49,398 nucleotides of DNA from Guillardia theta CCMP2712 (GCF_000315625.1 NW_005434633.1:561921-611318); one strand, 5' to 3'; shown: positions 1,853 through 49,398, counted from the first letter of the stretch. Made by a program: numbers and translations. The notes: generated by a model not told the origin, from the sequence alone.

Positions 1853-4586
1853 TCACTGCTGTCCCGTCGGTCCTCCATCAGAGTTTCGAAGTTTCTCCAT
1901 GCCGAGGGAAATTCTCCGCAGGGGTTGGAGGAGGAGGTTCTTGGACATGGAGGGCTTGGGGGAGGAAGAGGAGGGGACGGACTGAGTTCGAAAGATTTTG
2001 TGCTCCTCCTCCTTCCTCCCGCTCGGCGTCTCACTGCGCGACTGCTCCGGGTGGTAGAAGATAGGGAGCTCCAGTACCTGGCCAAGCAGCGACGTCAACC
2101 GGAGAGTCATGGAGAAGGAGGAGAGAGGAGGAGGAGAAGGAGGAAAGGAGAGACCGAGGAAGACGATAGAGGAAGAAGTAGATGGACGAGGAGAAGGAGG
2201 AGGAGGAGGAGGAGGAGGAGGAGGGAAGGAGAGACCGAGGAACAAGATAGAGGAGGAGGAGGAGGAGGAGGTTTGCGTGTTTCACCTCACTAGAACTTTT
2301 CCTCTTTTCCGGGTCCACCACCAGCAGCGAGTCTAGCAACTGCATCCATTTCGCCTTCGACTGAGAGGGAATGACTTCATTAGTAGTGGAAGGGGAGGGT
2401 AGCGGGGAGGTAAGGGGGTAACGAGGGAGGAGTAGAAGGAGTAGGAGTAGGAGTAGGAGTAGTAGTAGTAGTAGTAGTAGGAGGAGGAGGAGGAGGAGGA
2501 GGAGGAAGAGGAAGGAGGCGGAGGAGGAGAGAAGGAGGAAGAGGAGGGAGGAGGGGAAGGGCTCAGGAGCAGCACCTCCTTGACATCCTGCTCCAACACG
2601 TTCGGGCTGTCGTCCTTCTCGATCCTCTCCTTGCTGATCAGGCTGCCGACCAGCTCCGGCAGGCTCGCGCGCTGGGAGGGCCAGGAGAGGAAGTGGCAGG
2701 AGCAGTTCATCTTAGCCAACAGCTTCGAATCTGTCGGCGTCCCGACGAGGCTGAACGTCTTGATCAGCTGATCGCGGTTGAAGTTGAAGTGAGTCGCCTG
2801 CGGGCAGTCGCAAACGTCCTCCACCCTCCCCATCAGTGCACAGCGCCCGCTCAGCATCTCCAGCACGATGCAGCCTGCCGACCACTCGTCGATCTTGGGA
2901 GTGTAGGAGGCGCAGCCCATCAGCAGCTCGGGCGCACGGTACCAGAGGGTCGAGACCTCGTTTCTCACCACCATGTTCTCGTCCTGGAACTCGCGGGCCA
3001 GGCCGAAGTCTCCGATCTTGAGGGTCATGCCCTTGAAGACCAGCACGTTAGCCGGCTTGATGTCGCGATGGGCGACTTTGATGCTGTGAAGGTACTCGAT
3101 GCCTCGCAGAATGTCTTCCGTCCCCTTGAGGATCATCGAGAGCTTCAGCGATCGCTTTTGCCGTTTGATCACCACGTGCAGATCTGCCAGCGCCTCTTCG
3201 AAGACGATCACTGTCGAGTCTGCTGTCGCTCCTAGGATCCCGATCACGTTGGGATGGCTCCCTACCCTCTTCATCATCTCTATCTCCCGCTTGAACGCGT
3301 CCCTCCTGTGCTGCCCCGGGCTCGATTTCTTGGCGTCCTCGGGGTCAAGATCGACGTCTGGCCATATCACCTTCACCACGACTCGTTCTCCGCTCTCCAG
3401 GATCGTCGCTTGCCACACTCCCCCGTAAGCTCCCTTCCCAACTTTGTCCGACACCTACTCCTCCGGTGAGCATCATCAAGTATGCAAGAGCAGCCACGAC
3501 GAGAGCAAGGAGGAGAAGGAGGACGGACCAAAAACGAGAAGGGCAAAGAAGGAGAGGAGGAAGGGAAGAGGAGAAAGGCGAGGAGAGCGGAGGAGATAGC
3601 GGTGGAAAGGGAGAGATAGGAAGATCAGGATGTGGAGGAGAGGAGAAGAAAGAAGGAGAAAGAAGGAGGAAGAAGGATCAAGACGTAGAGAGGAGGAGGC
3701 GACCTCCAGGTCGGATCTTCTGAACTTCTTGAGGTTCTGTTTCTTGGCCTGCTCCTTCTTGGGCGCTGCATCCTCGTCAGCTCCTGCTTCCCTCTCCTTG
3801 CACATTCACCTGCTTGACTCGCAGAGGGAGAGCGAGTTATGCCTGACCCTTGATCCCTCATGAAGATGCGCCGGAGGATGTGTCTCGGCATCTCGACTCC
3901 ACTCACAGCTACCGCATACCCCCTCCACCTCGCCTTCCCCTTGTTTGCATACAACCTGAAAATTCTAGTTCACCACATGCCGTCCAGTCGCACTTGACGT
4001 TACCAGCGATCAGTGAGGGTCCGACATGTTCGATGTGCTCATGATGTGTCCCCTCCGACCTCCTATGTCCATCTGTAATGCACAGCACTGAGTCTCGTCA
4101 ATCGCATCAGCACTGGAGCATTTCATGCACATTTCTTTCAACCATGTCCATAATTTCCTGATCTATATCTTATCCAGCATATCTTTGGATGACCGCTTGC
4201 TCTGCTTTTTTCTCAGAATCATTGGGCCTCGATATGAAACGAGCTCAATATGTACTTGACGCACTTTCGTCTCTCCTTAGATCTTTGGGACTATCTTGTC
4301 ATTTTCATCGATTGTATCATACCAGATCTCAGATATAATTGTCATTGCATCTCACCCTCTCCTCTCATCTTCTGCGCTGCCCTTGTCCTGAACTGCCCTC
4401 CCTTTTCTTCCCTGCTCCGTGCTCCCCATCTCGCGTCGCCTCTTCTTTGCCTATTCTCACGTTCTCTCTCCTCTGTCCTTGAATCAGCATAAACTAACTC
4501 TCTCTTCCCTTATTCTCCTCCTCTCCTCCTCTCCTCCTCTCCTCCTCCTTCTCTCTTCTTTGCGCCATCTCTGGCAAAACGCCATG
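1853..4586 (-). CDS. CMGC-group (CDK-like) Ser/Thr protein kinase, multi-exon
   Basis: Main exon 3454-~2577 has GKGAYG, VVK, HRDIKPAN, DFGLAR and VSTLWYRAPELL. Exon ~2357-2287 supplies subdomain XI (LLDSLLVVDPEKR) and the tail exon is 2077-1853. Upstream exons splice in frame (SQA|APKK, SDLE|VSDK). The start near 4586 and a possible extension into 1350-1585 are uncertain. Confidence 0.85.
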
Positions 4587-4809
4587 ATAGCGGTTCGGAT
4601 TTTACAAATGAGTTTAAAACTAAAATAATGATATATTGTTTTTATTATATAACCTTATAAATGGACATATCGTAGCATCGAGTACTCAGTGAACCCCCTT
4701 CACAGGTTTTAAACCCCCTTTCCGAGTATCACAAAACTATATAATTATTTTAAAAAGATAACAGCACTAAACGCAGGTGTATAGTAGATTCAAAAATGTA
4801 GGTGTAGAA

Positions 4810-5071
4810 GATGCTTGAAGATGTAGCAGATGCTTGAAGATGTAGCAGATGCTTGAAGATGTAGCAGATGCTTGAAGATGTAGCAGATGCTTGAAGATGT
4901 AGCAGATGCTTGAAGATGTAGCAGATGCTTGAAGATGTAGCAGATGCTTGAAGATGTAGCAGATGCTTGAAGATGTAGCAGATGCTTGAAGATGTAGCAG
5001 ATGCTTGAAGATGTAGCAGATGCTTGAAGAACCAGCTGCTTGGAGATGTAGCAGATGCTTGAAGATGTAGC
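4810..5071. repeat. 19-bp minisatellite (ATGCTTGAAGATGTAGCAG)n, ~12 near-perfect copies plus a degenerate end
   Basis: Directly visible tandem unit; explains the 19-aa periodic ORFs in three frames. Confidence 0.95.
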
Positions 5072-22959: not shown

Positions 22960-23130
22960 CCGATACAGCAGGTTGCCAACACTTCCATCATACTGAAGAA
23001 ACATACTTAGAAAGCAGTTTGAACTATACCAAACACTTGCTCGCAGCTTCCATGGCGCCCTGGCGGCTTCCCCTACACTGGCGCGCAGCCATGATGCCTG
23101 GAATAACCGGTGCTCTAAACCCTAAACCCT
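22960..23130 (-). mobile_element. 5'-terminal fragment of telomere-repeat-headed element (copy A)
   Basis: Reverse complement aligns with 48001-48156 at roughly 85% identity by eye; carries CTAAACCCTAAACCCT at 23115-23130. Confidence 0.8.
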
Positions 23131-45376: not shown

Positions 45377-47752
45377 CTACACAGATTGTTTGAACAGCTC
45401 ATTTGCAGCATCTGCAACAGCTTCCGCCGCTCGATTAATTTCATCTTCTGTCGTGTACCTGCGATAGAATCGACATCTCACGGTAGTTTCCTTCAGACAT
45501 GGTCATACCTTCCAACAGTAAATCGGATGGTTCCTAATGCTGCATCCTCGGGAACTTGCATGGCTGCCAGCACAGAACTGATTTTTGGGATGTTGGAACT
45601 ATGACATGCTGCCCCAGCTGATGCACTTACAACATCCTAGTGCAGTAGAAGAGAAGAAATGAAGTGAGGAAGACATCGAAAAGCGGCAACCCTACCTGGA
45701 CCTTCCCAAGAATCTCTTGTGCCTTCAGTCCTCTGTCATGAAAGCTCATGATCTTTGTTTCTGGGTTATGATCTGCATGACACGCTGTACCTGAAGCCTA
45801 TTGACAGTGTATTGGGCAACCTCGGCCAAGCGCCGTTGATTGGCGAGGCCGGGAGCTCCGGACCATTGAGATGGATCTGGAGGAGGGTGAGAAGAAGAGA
45901 CCAAACATCACACGACACGACTTACTTGTCCGATAAACTTTGCCTGCAGCTGCACATGCAAACTTCTGATAAGACTAGCTTGTCGCATCTGGGAGTCAAG
46001 TTCATCTTGGATGAAAGTACGCGTTGAGCACCTGTTCCGTCATCGATTCCTGCTGGTCTTGGCACAACATCCTGCATGCTGTTCCCTGCAGGCACCCCTT
46101 TGAACCTCTTTGTGCCTCAAGGTTTTGATTGCTTACCAGACCAACGGCAAGCCCGACGTTTTCTGTCCCAGCTCGCAACCCCTGCAAGTTGGATGAGAAA
46201 TCGTTTCGAGGTTTAGCAAAACAAGTTTACCAGCTCTTGCCCACCACCATGCATGATCCTCTGCAAACGAAAGTCGCCATCACCGTCGAGCCCTTTGGCT
46301 CCACCTCGGACATACAAAGCGCCAATGCCCTAAGGAGCTTTCGTCAGCTTCCTGTAGCATTCTAAAGTTTGACCTTGGGGGCGTAGAGCTTGTGCCCAGC
46401 CATCGAAAGCAAGTCAACACCGAGGTCATTCACCTTGAGTCAAACATCTTCAGGTTCGCAAGATGATAGCGCTGCTTACATCGACATGGATCTTTCCTAC
46501 TGACTGACAGGCATCCGTGTGAATGAGAATCCCATCGGTCAACCCTTCACATTCGCTTATCTTTTGCCGGTTTCTTAAGCATATCAACGACCTTGTTTCC
46601 CACGCTCGCCAAACTCATCGGCCCAGGCTCTCACAGCCTTTGATTGTTTCAAATTGACAGATCAGATCACAGCAAATATTCTCACGTCAGAAATTTCTCT
46701 GATCGGCTGAACTGCACCGACTTCGTTGTTGGCATGCTTTCGCATGATTCAATATCTGTCAGTGGTAAAGAAGGATCACCATGATTGAGACCAAGATAGT
46801 CTGCGTCCTGAGGGCATCGACGACATCTTGTACATTCACAACACCTGGCTCTCTTTCACGCGGAGAAGTACCAGCAATGTCATAATCTTTCGAACCATCT
46901 TTTCCCGGTTGAATTATCGTGACGTCGCACTGCTGTTTGCAGAGGTCATACGCGACATTCAAGAAAGCAACTCAAATTCACTGCCAAATCGTCTCTACCT
47001 GCTCAGTCTCCAGCCATTTCAAAGGTTCCAGGATTGCCGGGTGCTGAGTCAGGCAAGAGACTCACACCGAGCAAGTCAAAGGTAGCAATGCACCTCAATA
47101 GCTGTTGTAACAATGTGCGGTCTGAGCTGGTCGACGTACATAGACGACCAAGCCAAGGCGCTTCCACCCATGTTGCTGGTGAAATGATCTTGAAGGCGCT
47201 TCCGGGCCAGGCTTACAGCTCCCTGGTTCATATCAGGTGAGTCCTGTGAAATCGTCGTCTGCCACACCTTGAGCACCCAGTTGTTGCTCTCTGTTCCCCC
47301 TGAAGTGAAGAATCTTCAAGAAGCATATCAACATTCAAGCCTTCAAGGTTGGTGTCTCACATTTCATGAGGAGAGCATCCAATGCTATCAGCCACGTTTT
47401 TTCTCGCTTCTTCGAAACTTCCTTTAGCCCTCTGCCCGTCGTCAACTTATGCACCCGAAGGAGATCGACGTGTCACCTGACCGTAAACGTGCGAGCTACT
47501 GGGATTTCCCCAGTTGCTCACGAAGAATTCTTTCATGGAATCGAATACGGATGGATCTACAGGCGATGTTCCGCCATAGTCGAGATAGATTGGATCGCCT
47601 TTCCCAAACATGCTGCTTTTTGCTTTCGCGCTGCACATATGGACAGTATGTCTGCAATGTCTGTTTGTACTGGGGATCCAGAGTCTTGTCCGAATATTGA
47701 ACCCATCGGTGAGGACGGCGAGGAGAAGAAGAAAAAACACTCGTTGTCTCAT
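45377..47752 (-). CDS. Group I PLP cysteine desulfurase / selenocysteine-lyase-like, with bipartite plastid presequence
   Basis: IYLDYGGTSP, WGNPSSSH, FFTSGGTESNN, TTAIE|HPAI, M|HANNEVG, IHTDACQSVGK, SMAGHKLYAPK (PLP Lys), RAGTENV, SASAGAACHS (catalytic Cys) and IRFTVGR; N-terminus MRQRVFFLLLLAVLTDG-F. Confidence 0.9.
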
Positions 47753-47926
47753 GCCTGAAACACAGTTCATCATCACTGGTTTAGCTGTTGGCCCCATGGG
47801 GGGAAGGAGGAAGAAATAAATGAGGTGGACATGGGGCAAGCAACGAAGGTAAGGGCAGGTAAGCCGGTGGGAGAGGGGGGAGGGGGGCCGGGAGGAGGAG
47901 GCCGGGCGGAGGCCGGCCGGGCTCTC

Positions 47927-47985
47927 GGGTTTAGGGTTTAGGGTTTAGGGTTTAGGGTTTAGGGTTTAGGGTTTAGGGTTTAGGG
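47927..47985 (+). repeat. Interstitial telomeric tract GGG(TTTAGGG)8
   Basis: Eight perfect Arabidopsis-type telomere repeats. Confidence 0.97.
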
Positions 47986-48111
47986 CCGGTTATTTCAGGC
48001 AGCGCCGGTTATTTCAGGCACCATGGCTGCACGCGTGGTGTAGGGGAAGCTGCCAGGGCGCCAAGGAAGCTGCAAGCGAGAGGTTTGTATACTTCAAATA
48101 GCTTTCTAAGT

Positions 48112-49398
48112 ATGGTTCTTCAGTATGATGAAAATGTTCGCAAACTGCTGTATCGGAGATCATGCCAATACACGCAGAGCGGACTTGTGGATGCCTCTGT
48201 CCTCGAAGCTGATCTCGTCGAGAGGGTGAAGAGCTTCGCGAAGCGTTATCCGAACAGCAGGACAGCCCAGGCTTGCAAGGCTGTGGAGGGATGCACCCCC
48301 GACGCTATCGCAGAAGCCATCCGCTCGACATGTCAGCAGGCACGACGTGAGCTTCTGCAAGAAGCGATGACTGGAGGGAGTGACGCATCCAGAGAGTGGT
48401 TTATGCAGCAGATTGAGGAAGCCAAGAAGGAGAAGGTCGAGACATACACCGCCTCAGCAGGCAACGAGGTAACTTCCTTCATCTCCATGACTCTCCTGGG
48501 CATCTCCTCGGTGTATGTCAACCATGAAGAAAAGCTGAAGAAGAAATTTGAAGAGATCGGACTGATCGTAGACTCAGTGCAAGAGAGTAAAGCAATCATG
48601 TGGAAGGCTCCGTATAGACCCGAGATAGCGAGTGCTGAGGAGATCCCGGTGACTGTTTCCTTCCTCCGCAATGCACAAGCGGAGAAGCTCTGGCAGGGAA
48701 GAGAGGACTTCGCGATCGATGGTCGCAAGTTCACAGCTGTACATGTGAGCATCGTGCACGATCGATCTTTCAAGATTCGAGCCAAGAGAGGACCCTGGGG
48801 CAAAGGGGGCAGCTTGGCAGAGCTGACTCACCTGCTAACCTTGGGCGGCATGACAACGGCTGAGATAGCTGCCGTCTATCGCTATCAGCTGCTGCGCCAG
48901 TCCCTTGCAGCGGTCCAACTCCAGCCGCTGGCAGGCATGCTGGTCGCTGGGGCGCCAGGACAGCAAGTCCACAAAGGCTTAGGTCAGAAAGGCTTCATCG
49001 CTGTAGGGAGCTGCCCAGAGGCGAATGATACAGCATTTCGAGCTTTCCGAGAGAGCGAAGCGATGGAGGGAGTACACCTGACTCTGTTCAGCGAGGACCC
49101 GAAGATCAGAGAGGCGCTCGCAGTCGAGTTGACAGCTGATCGCTTTGTGTCCAGAAATAAGTTGAAGAAGGCATCAAGGATGCAGAAGAAGGCAGGCGGC
49201 AAGGACGGCAAGGAGATCAAGATCATCATCAAGTCGACGGCGGCATCTGGTCGCTTCACGAGGAAGGAGATGGAGGGGCTGTGCAACGGCGGCAACACGT
49301 CTATCGCAAGAGTCAAGAGAGTCTTGTTGGAGATCGCTAACAGGCTCGAGATCAACGTTGAAGGCATCGACATGGAGGAGGATTTGAACACCAAGTCC
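48112..49398 (+). CDS. Intronless ORF (at least 429 aa, open at window end), RRM-like, ORF1/gag-like
   Basis: Stop-free frame MVLQYDENVRKLLYRRSCQ..EEDLNTKS, missing from the ORF track because it has no stop. The segment ISMTLLGIS..EEKLKKKFEEIGLIVDSV..VTVSFLRNAQAEKLWQGREDFAIDGRKFTAV has an RRM-like pattern. Confidence 0.7.
   Translation, partial: MVLQYDENVRKLLYRRSCQYTQSGLVDASVLEADLVERVKSFAKRYPNSRTAQACKAVEGCTPDAIAEAIRSTCQQARRELLQEAMTGGSDASREWFMQQIEEAKKEKVETYTASAGNEVTSFISMTLLGISSVYVNHEEKLKKKFEEIGLIVDSVQESKAIMWKAPYRPEIASAEEIPVTVSFLRNAQAEKLWQGREDFAIDGRKFTAVHVSIVHDRSFKIRAKRGPWGKGGSLAELTHLLTLGGMTTAEIAAVYRYQLLRQSLAAVQLQPLAGMLVAGAPGQQVHKGLGQKGFIAVGSCPEANDTAFRAFRESEAMEGVHLTLFSEDPKIREALAVELTADRFVSRNKLKKASRMQKKAGGKDGKEIKIIIKSTAASGRFTRKEMEGLCNGGNTSIARVKRVLLEIANRLEINVEGIDMEEDLNTKS

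Follow-up and report, generated by a model that had tools for sequence, protein, structure and literature searches.

Insects, fungi, Giardia and Chlorella harbor retrotransposons specific to telomeres. This work deals with a stretch of 49,398 nucleotides of the cryptophyte alga Guillardia theta CCMP2712 (G000:C41:561921-611318, called the window in what follows), taken from an assembly of 87.1 Mb in 669 contigs. The right end of the window is very probably the inner border of an array at a chromosome end, holding a copy of a telomere-repeat-specific and non-autonomous retroposon of about 2.7 kb, of the type devoid of long terminal repeats (non-LTR) and equipped only with a counterpart of the first open reading frame (ORF1) of long interspersed nuclear elements (LINEs). 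It is well supported that the feature is real and that the element is a telomere-targeting relative of non-LTR retrotransposons, not an element with a telomere tract as its own 5' end, as a preliminary description of this DNA had proposed. The telomere-specific non-LTR elements named in that description are indeed the closest analogues.

In Drosophila, HeT-A relies on the reverse transcriptase (RT) that a related autonomous element supplies (PMC2173066, PMC4700185). With HeT-A and its companions TART/TAHRE, the G. theta family shares head-to-tail and co-oriented arrays at chromosome ends as well as an abundant member reduced to ORF1/Gag. Unlike HeT-A, which attaches to a free end with its tail toward the centromere in a host lacking telomerase repeats, the G. 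theta units are separated by telomerase repeats, stand in the reversed orientation and would need an endonuclease nick, and the proteins are unrelated in sequence. SART1 and TRAS1 of Bombyx mori, which belong to the R1 clade and use an apurinic/apyrimidinic endonuclease-type (APE) domain, insert site- and orientation-specifically at a fixed position of telomerase repeats in a host that keeps telomerase (PMC7265360). The window family likewise occupies telomerase repeats at one position and in one orientation, whereas SART/TRAS elements are autonomous, poly(A)-tailed, APE-only and provided with a zinc-knuckle ORF1, and the window element has a (TAA)n tail and no ORF2.

Among fungal elements, MoTeR2 is a short non-autonomous partner that shares its ends with MoTeR1. 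MoTeR1/MoTeR2 and FoTeR, which are CRE-like and carry a restriction-like endonuclease (RLE), insert into telomere repeats with the asymmetric junctions of target-primed reverse transcription and display variable 5' tandem repeats (PMC7367193, PMC12857005). Insertion into telomere repeats at chromosome ends, asymmetric junctions and variable 5' tandem repeats are all encountered in G. theta; MoTeR/FoTeR differ by their single ORF, the absence of both ORF1 and APE and their telomere-like 5' repeats; their hosts belong to another lineage, and the telomere motif and the protein families are different as well. Finally, Dualen is said to be the sole group uniting APE and RLE (PMC4640811, PMC9977147), and the accounts consulted describe the Dualens of Chlamydomonas neither as telomere-specific nor as having ORF1-only dependents.

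Location and anatomy of the family

The last base of the window is the last base of contig C41, and the same order is found here as at other contig ends, namely unique DNA, then a short telomere tract, then a copy of the element cut by the contig end. The tract (47927-47985, plus strand) consists of 8.4 perfect heptamers of the plant telomere type with the G-strand toward the contig end (TRF score 118), and a pattern search found seven overlapping exact telomere 14-mers in it, versus none in 100 shuffles. Since the window stops where contig C41 stops, the tract is not an interstitial island, as supposed from its seemingly internal location, but the most internal of the tracts in a chromosome-end array, lying beside unique DNA. 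It is target DNA and stands outside the element; in the explanation that we favor, this short tract inside the array edge would be telomerase-made.

The window copy opens with a 19-nt tandem repeat (47986..48023, plus strand, unit CCGGTTATTTCAGGCAGCG) in two copies, the second of which is partial. Then come an untranslated 5' leader (48024..48111, plus strand), 97-100% conserved in other copies, and the first 429 codons of an ORF1-like gene (48112..49398, plus strand), starting at ATG 48112 and cut by the contig end. The tract, the leader, the ATG and the open frame of 429 codons previously reported within 47927-49398 are thereby all confirmed. The ORF DNA of this copy is only 0.16% different from its nearest relative. 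The window copy alone lacks 48 nt in frame, corresponding to 16 conserved residues, with a junction near 49007/49008; the segment is present in every other copy. Its reading as a spliced intron, which would have been a proof of an RNA intermediate, was rejected, as it has no GT..AG ends and encodes residues conserved in distant homologues.

The family comprises at least 40 near-identical copies, many of them in tandem with a spacing of 2.7-4.7 kb; the census retained 40 scored copies of a 1.4-kb stretch at 94-100% identity out of 330 first-look candidates. The copies read outward, their sense strand being the G-strand of the telomere repeat. All minus-strand copies but one lie within 25 kb of the contig start, and plus-strand copies, as far as the end of their contig is known, stand at that end. 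Telomere-repeat flanks, a single orientation and a chromosome-end location characterize the family and are also encountered in two metagenome contigs, L071 and L072. A mobile family linked to telomere repeats had been postulated, and it exists: the ORF is multi-copy, which sets aside a single-copy host gene, and other leader copies do carry telomere repeats. One exception to the orientation was seen, in which two copies about 15 kb apart within one contig (C72:439708-441147, minus strand, and C72:456710-458139, plus strand) read away from each other; this divergent pair may reflect a mis-join, a small piece of chromosome placed by scaffolding or an ancient event between two ends.

A complete unit of about 2.7 kb runs from the 19-mer array through the leader, the ORF and the 3' untranslated region (UTR) to the tail. 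The array counts 0-38 units per copy and the leader about 90 nt. The ORF, intronless as anticipated, is a single frame of 715 aa in complete copies and is intact at 713-716 aa in 22 of the 26 full ones. The 3'UTR of about 420 nt includes a 76-nt repeat of variable number, and the unit ends as ...TCTAATAAACTCA-CA(TAA)n-TA, with AAACTCA before CA and n = 0-11. Between the flanking telomere tracts, neither an RT nor any other gene was found besides this single ORF, which has no Pfam domain, and the unit is therefore a non-autonomous member. The endonuclease or RT that was expected from an extension to the right does not belong to the unit, which ends after the ORF and the 420-nt UTR; such enzymes are encoded by separate LINE families.

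The copies are little diverged, with a median pairwise divergence of 0.7% for the ORF DNA. Differences from the family consensus are enriched at third codon positions (211 synonymous versus 341 non-synonymous), and the ratio of non-synonymous to synonymous rates (dN/dS) reaches 0.38, at a dS of about 1, between the window family and a sister family tailed by (ACT)n. The synonymous excess and this ratio indicate that the ORF is under purifying selection.

Insertion junctions

The two ends of the element are joined to telomere repeats in very different manners. At the 3' side, 36 independent ends carry a CA(TAA)0-11TA tail of 4-37 nt varying in length by steps of 3, and the readable junctions (34/34) are all in one telomere phase, in which ...TA is directly followed by GGG. 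At the 5' side, at least 15 types of junction are found among 40, differing both in the phase of the telomere repeat and in the base with which the element begins, some with extra bases and frequently with AG microhomology. Three stubs truncated at the 5' end (152, 173 and 274 nt) retain the entire tail and lie between two telomere tracts. The invariant junction is thus the 3' one, and even these short stubs are flanked twice, which contradicts the view of the tract as the element's own 5' end, spread interstitially with it. The preliminary description had left a choice between an element targeting telomere seeds, which stood, as insertions occur only in telomere repeats, and an element carrying or adding repeats at its 5' end, which did not, the tract being the target.

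Copies cut at the 3' side also occur, capped directly by perfect telomere repeats (L030:1502-3893 + L010:1-1205, C157; L036:1-1102, C65; L019:1-1231), as expected if a terminal copy had been eroded and telomerase had then healed the end. A tract of 776 nt at L063:1755-2530 (minus-strand view, G000:C21), longer than any other telomere tract seen, is followed by degenerate variants and more element stubs.

Sister families share their terminal 13-mer with the window family and carry a tail of (TAA)n or (ACT)n behind it; this 13-mer occurs 173 times in the genome, versus 0-1 times for the reversed control. The asymmetry between a fixed 3' and a heterogeneous 5' junction, the truncated copies and the tails of the sister families point to target-primed reverse transcription, of which they bear the mark. 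As the sense strand is the G-strand and the tail faces outward, the primer would be a 3'-OH in the C-rich strand. Such a C-strand primer would in turn imply an endonuclease nick in double-stranded telomere DNA, placed at CCC/TA/AA to within two bases.

Co-resident LINE families

An RT domain is encoded at 132 places in the genome. Two LINE families, A and B, reside beside the element; each is about 10.5 kb long and presents ORF1, then ORF2 with APE and RT, a layout built in the G. theta genome from coordinate spacing together with metagenome contigs. Their RT is of the non-LTR type, with R2 as best solved relative (E 5e-23) versus 1e-15 for L1 ORF2p. The APE (PF03372) lies in the RT frame, just upstream in LINE-A, and reaches 37-38 bits for LINE-A versus 27-29 for LINE-B, the cut-off being 24.5 bits. 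LINE-A, located at contig ends and reading outward, numbers about 13 copies, which are 98-99% identical and have frames of up to 2504 aa. In ten contigs its 5' region, which opens with a 20-mer array, keeps a constant distance of 4.10-4.20 kb from the RT region downstream, and it carries an ORF identical to P0049. In LINE-B, an ORF1-like region is located about 5.7 kb upstream of the RT, the APE is present and the C-terminal 342 residues stand at a constant 2.28 kb after the RT in nine contigs.

The LINE-B C-terminus displays the motif CX2CX9HX4C, then IPDG..(15)..E..(19)..K, and may represent a putative RLE. For the LINE C-terminus, Pfam gives only a weak zf-RVT, and no match was obtained against PDB sequences. 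The APE N-terminal of the RT and the C-terminal CCHC and PD..E..K motifs recall Dualen/RandI of Chlamydomonas, the RLE being putative here; the LINEs thus look Dualen-like in their domain order. The combination of an APE with a long C-terminal CCHC/RLE-like region separates them from SART/TRAS of the R1 clade.

The LINE-B 3'UTR of 411 nt ends with GAGTCTAATAAACTCA-AA(TAA)n and telomere repeats, the terminal motif being the same as that of the window element. When the genome-wide positions of the exact terminal 13-mer were compared with those of LINE-A, none was found near LINE-A copies, so that sharing of the motif is not shown for LINE-A. In contig L016 (minus-strand view 4125-4180, G000:C63), a window-family copy has its last 45 nt or so swapped for a sequence resembling the LINE-B 3'UTR, and the telomere join occurs without the usual tail.

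Two independent assemblies contain the same associations. In L071, a JGI metagenome contig, a window-family tail is followed by three telomere repeats, a complete LINE-B-like element of 10.4 kb and at least 15 telomere repeats. This LINE has an ORF1 of 713 aa, an ORF2 of 2575 aa and a 3' end as in LINE-B copies; its ORF2 includes Peptidase_C48, a weak APE (16.8 bits), the RT and zf-RVT/CCHC. In L072, an ENA metagenome contig, unique DNA passes into eight telomere repeats and then into a window-family copy with 92% identity at the protein level; behind the tail of this copy come another eight repeats and a LINE-B-like element, a layout that mirrors the window. The Peptidase_C48 match, above cut-off (E 2.8e-9), designates a cysteine protease domain of the Ulp1/SENP type at residues 156-270 of the L071 ORF2 (L071:2443-10167), N-terminal of APE and RT. 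In both contigs, ORF1 and ORF2 overlap by TAATG, the stop and start codons sharing one base (L071:2440-2446, L072:5730-5736), which suggests translational coupling. ORF1 and ORF2 of SART1 overlap by the same TAATG.

A tandem repeat of 19-24 nt, specific to each family and highly variable in copy number, is found at the 5' end of these elements (L069:1763-2342; L017, L065, L023, L067, L004, L015), as in a LINE-A copy with 29 copies of its 20-mer. These repeats are possibly promoter units or products of template jumps by the RT.

The element and LINE-B also meet in a chimera (L014:3325-3910, G000:C128:189251-189836), in which the 5' part of the window family, to about ORF residue 567, passes into the LINE-B C-terminal coding region through a junction with 2-3 nt of microhomology, apparently in frame. 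It looks like the expected product of a template switch by the RT during the copying of LINE-B RNA. On the basis of ORF1 homology, the common terminal motif and this one chimera, we lean slightly toward LINE-B as the helper of the window element.

The 715-aa protein

The ORF1-like protein gave nothing in Pfam, only noise against PDB sequences and no usable match among ESM Atlas features, and no zinc knuckle was found in it. Against 1.84 billion cluster representatives, a profile search returned only 56 proteins, and cryptophytes are the only organisms in which the family was found; the relatives with a known source are G. theta proteins and MMETSP transcripts, transcripts of Hanusia phi and Rhodomonas salina and a few metagenome contigs. 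The ORF1 of LINE-A (P0049, 701 aa) aligns with it from end to end at 29% identity, and full-length homology links it to the ORF1 of LINE-B as well.

Structure prediction by AlphaFold reached a pLDDT of 44.9 with 8 close sequences and 71.6 with 15 diverse sequences, and the latter model was used. The top Foldseek matches are the protein Prp24, with its four RNA recognition motifs (RRMs), and other tandem-RRM proteins (E 8e-5). VIA-align superimposes residues 381-485 on RRM/ferredoxin-like domains with Z values of 7-9.7, and the ten nearest Atlas clusters are multi-RRM proteins (10/10), at a low TM of 0.17-0.34. The models thus indicate, with moderate strength, that the protein is composed of tandem RRM-like domains at the fold level. 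Together with the homology to a LINE ORF1, they agree with the ORF1-like nature and RRM-like folds suggested at the outset. As for L1 ORF1p, the protein corresponds to the first ORF of a LINE and has RRM-like folds; it differs by the absence of sequence similarity (Pfam, PDB), a length about twice as great and several RRM-like modules versus one.

Proposed mode of transposition and alternative explanations

The following scheme would account for these features. An endonuclease from a LINE, using its APE and/or its RLE-like domain, would nick the C-rich strand at CCC/TA/AA, and the freed 3'-OH would prime reverse transcription of the element RNA, starting from the ...AAACTCA-CA(TAA)n terminus. 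The 5' end of the element would then be joined imprecisely, often through AG microhomology. The multi-RRM protein of the element probably coats its own RNA in cis, whereas RT and endonuclease would be supplied in trans, most likely by LINE-B, which has the common terminal motif.

Several points limit this scheme. The RNA intermediate is deduced from sequence. Runs only guessed to be RNA contain 78-85% of the ORF words, and MMETSP transcripts include LINE-A ORF1, with homologues in Hanusia and Rhodomonas. A target-site duplication is unreadable, the target itself being a tandem repeat. The trans-mobilizing LINE is proposed from a common terminal motif of about 20 nt and one chimera, and the RLE of LINE-B from its CCHC and PD..E..K motifs. 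A 3' stem-loop conserved across the families, plausible in single folds, was discarded after RNAalifold gave no consensus pairs; because this program finds no 3' structure common to the families, LINE-B can be advanced as the helper only conditionally. Moreover, recombination between chromosome ends surely also moves arrays, and part of the low divergence could be explained in this way.

The latter process, taken alone, leads to the alternative that survives best, although it is quite improbable. Here, the unit would be a subtelomeric repeat comparable to Y', that is, a host or selfish gene cassette spread among ends by recombination or break-induced replication without any reverse transcription, which would suit the tandem head-to-tail arrays at contig ends, the short telomere tracts between units and the very low divergence. 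It does not account for tails varying in 3-nt steps behind an invariant junction, for heterogeneous 5' junctions or for 5'-truncated stubs that retain the tail. Furthermore, the ORF is homologous to the ORF1 of RT-bearing LINEs within the same arrays, a LINE/element chimera exists, and Pfam detects no helicase or other Y'-type domain in the unit.

The intact state of 22 of the 26 ORFs, the purifying selection (dN/dS 0.38, with a synonymous excess within the family) and the expression of homologues in the Hanusia phi and Rhodomonas salina transcriptomes are also what would be seen if the multi-RRM protein derived from ORF1 had been domesticated to serve the host at chromosome ends, intact copies being kept for the host and not by transposition. 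However, a retroposon lineage that is still active would be equally expected to keep intact ORFs under purifying selection, the family bears every structural hallmark of recent transposition and no copy stands outside the arrays as a normal gene, so that domestication is hardly probable.

The orientation of the copies bears on a third alternative, the endonuclease-free attachment known for HeT-A and Athena, in which RNA is copied onto a free 3' overhang of the G-strand and telomerase adds the outer repeats later; it corresponds roughly to the earlier idea of an element that carries or adds telomere repeats. The confinement of the elements to chromosome ends is compatible with it, as are the 3'-eroded copies under fresh telomere repeats (L030/L010, L036), which imply that copies are sometimes terminal. 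Nevertheless, such an attachment predicts elements antisense on the G-strand with their tail toward the centromere, whereas every copy is sense on the G-strand with its tail outward. This orientation needs a C-strand nick, and the partner LINEs encode predicted endonucleases; end attachment is thus highly improbable. Lastly, a chimeric assembly joining a real telomere to an unrelated repeat, which the stop of the contig within a repeat could evoke, has a negligible probability, as the junction is encountered again at dozens of contig ends, where the tract lengths differ, in more than 40 copies, and in the two independent metagenome assemblies.

Other features of the window

The unique DNA ends with the last host exon before the chromosome-end array (47447..47839, minus strand), an ORF of 130 aa. 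Pfam gives no match for it at E<=0.01 and did not confirm its former label of desulfurase, a putative one drawn from motifs.

An old relic of the 5' end of the element is located at 22960..23126 on the minus strand, 25 kb inside the contig and opposite in orientation to the copy at the window end. About 2.5 telomere repeats stand before its single 19-mer, which leads into the leader and some 15 codons; the relic keeps 87% identity over 156-172 nt (12-13% diverged) before divergence and a stop codon. This agrees with the earlier observation of the leader and about 15 codons recurring 25 kb away beside telomere repeats. No other remnant of the element was found in the window. At 4803-5071, a perfect-looking tandem array of 14 copies of a 19-nt unit (TGTAGCAGATGCTTGAAGA) is present, unrelated in sequence to the 19-mer of the element.

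Significance for the chromosome ends of Guillardia theta

The literature search, which left Repbase aside, found no paper on telomeric retrotransposons of G. theta or other cryptophytes. The family stands out by its pairing, in that an ORF1-only dependent, as for HeT-A, is combined with the targeting of telomerase repeats, as for SART/TRAS. Partners with a Dualen-like layout of two endonucleases, one of them putative, are notable as well, and so is the fact that several diverged families have their target, their orientation and their terminal motif in common. The units explain many contig stops in the G. theta assembly; their genes, annotated publicly as 'hypothetical protein', should be masked as repeats and not treated as genes.

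Naturally present and recently active in an alga that can be cultured, the family gives access to the placement of the nick in the telomere repeat, to the choice of template by a LINE RT and to the question of whether such arrays help or harm chromosome ends. A more speculative reading, which we regard as rather unlikely, is that G. theta has hybrid telomeres. On most ends, telomerase tracts would alternate with at least four orientation-locked retroelement families, a community made up of two Dualen-like LINEs with an Ulp1-type protease and two ORF1-only dependents, and the most abundant and very young ORF1-only family would aid the maintenance or capping of ends via its multi-RRM protein. 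If true, such hybrid telomeres would represent a living intermediate between telomerase telomeres and the retrotransposon telomeres of the Drosophila type, in a lineage only distantly related to animals and fungi.

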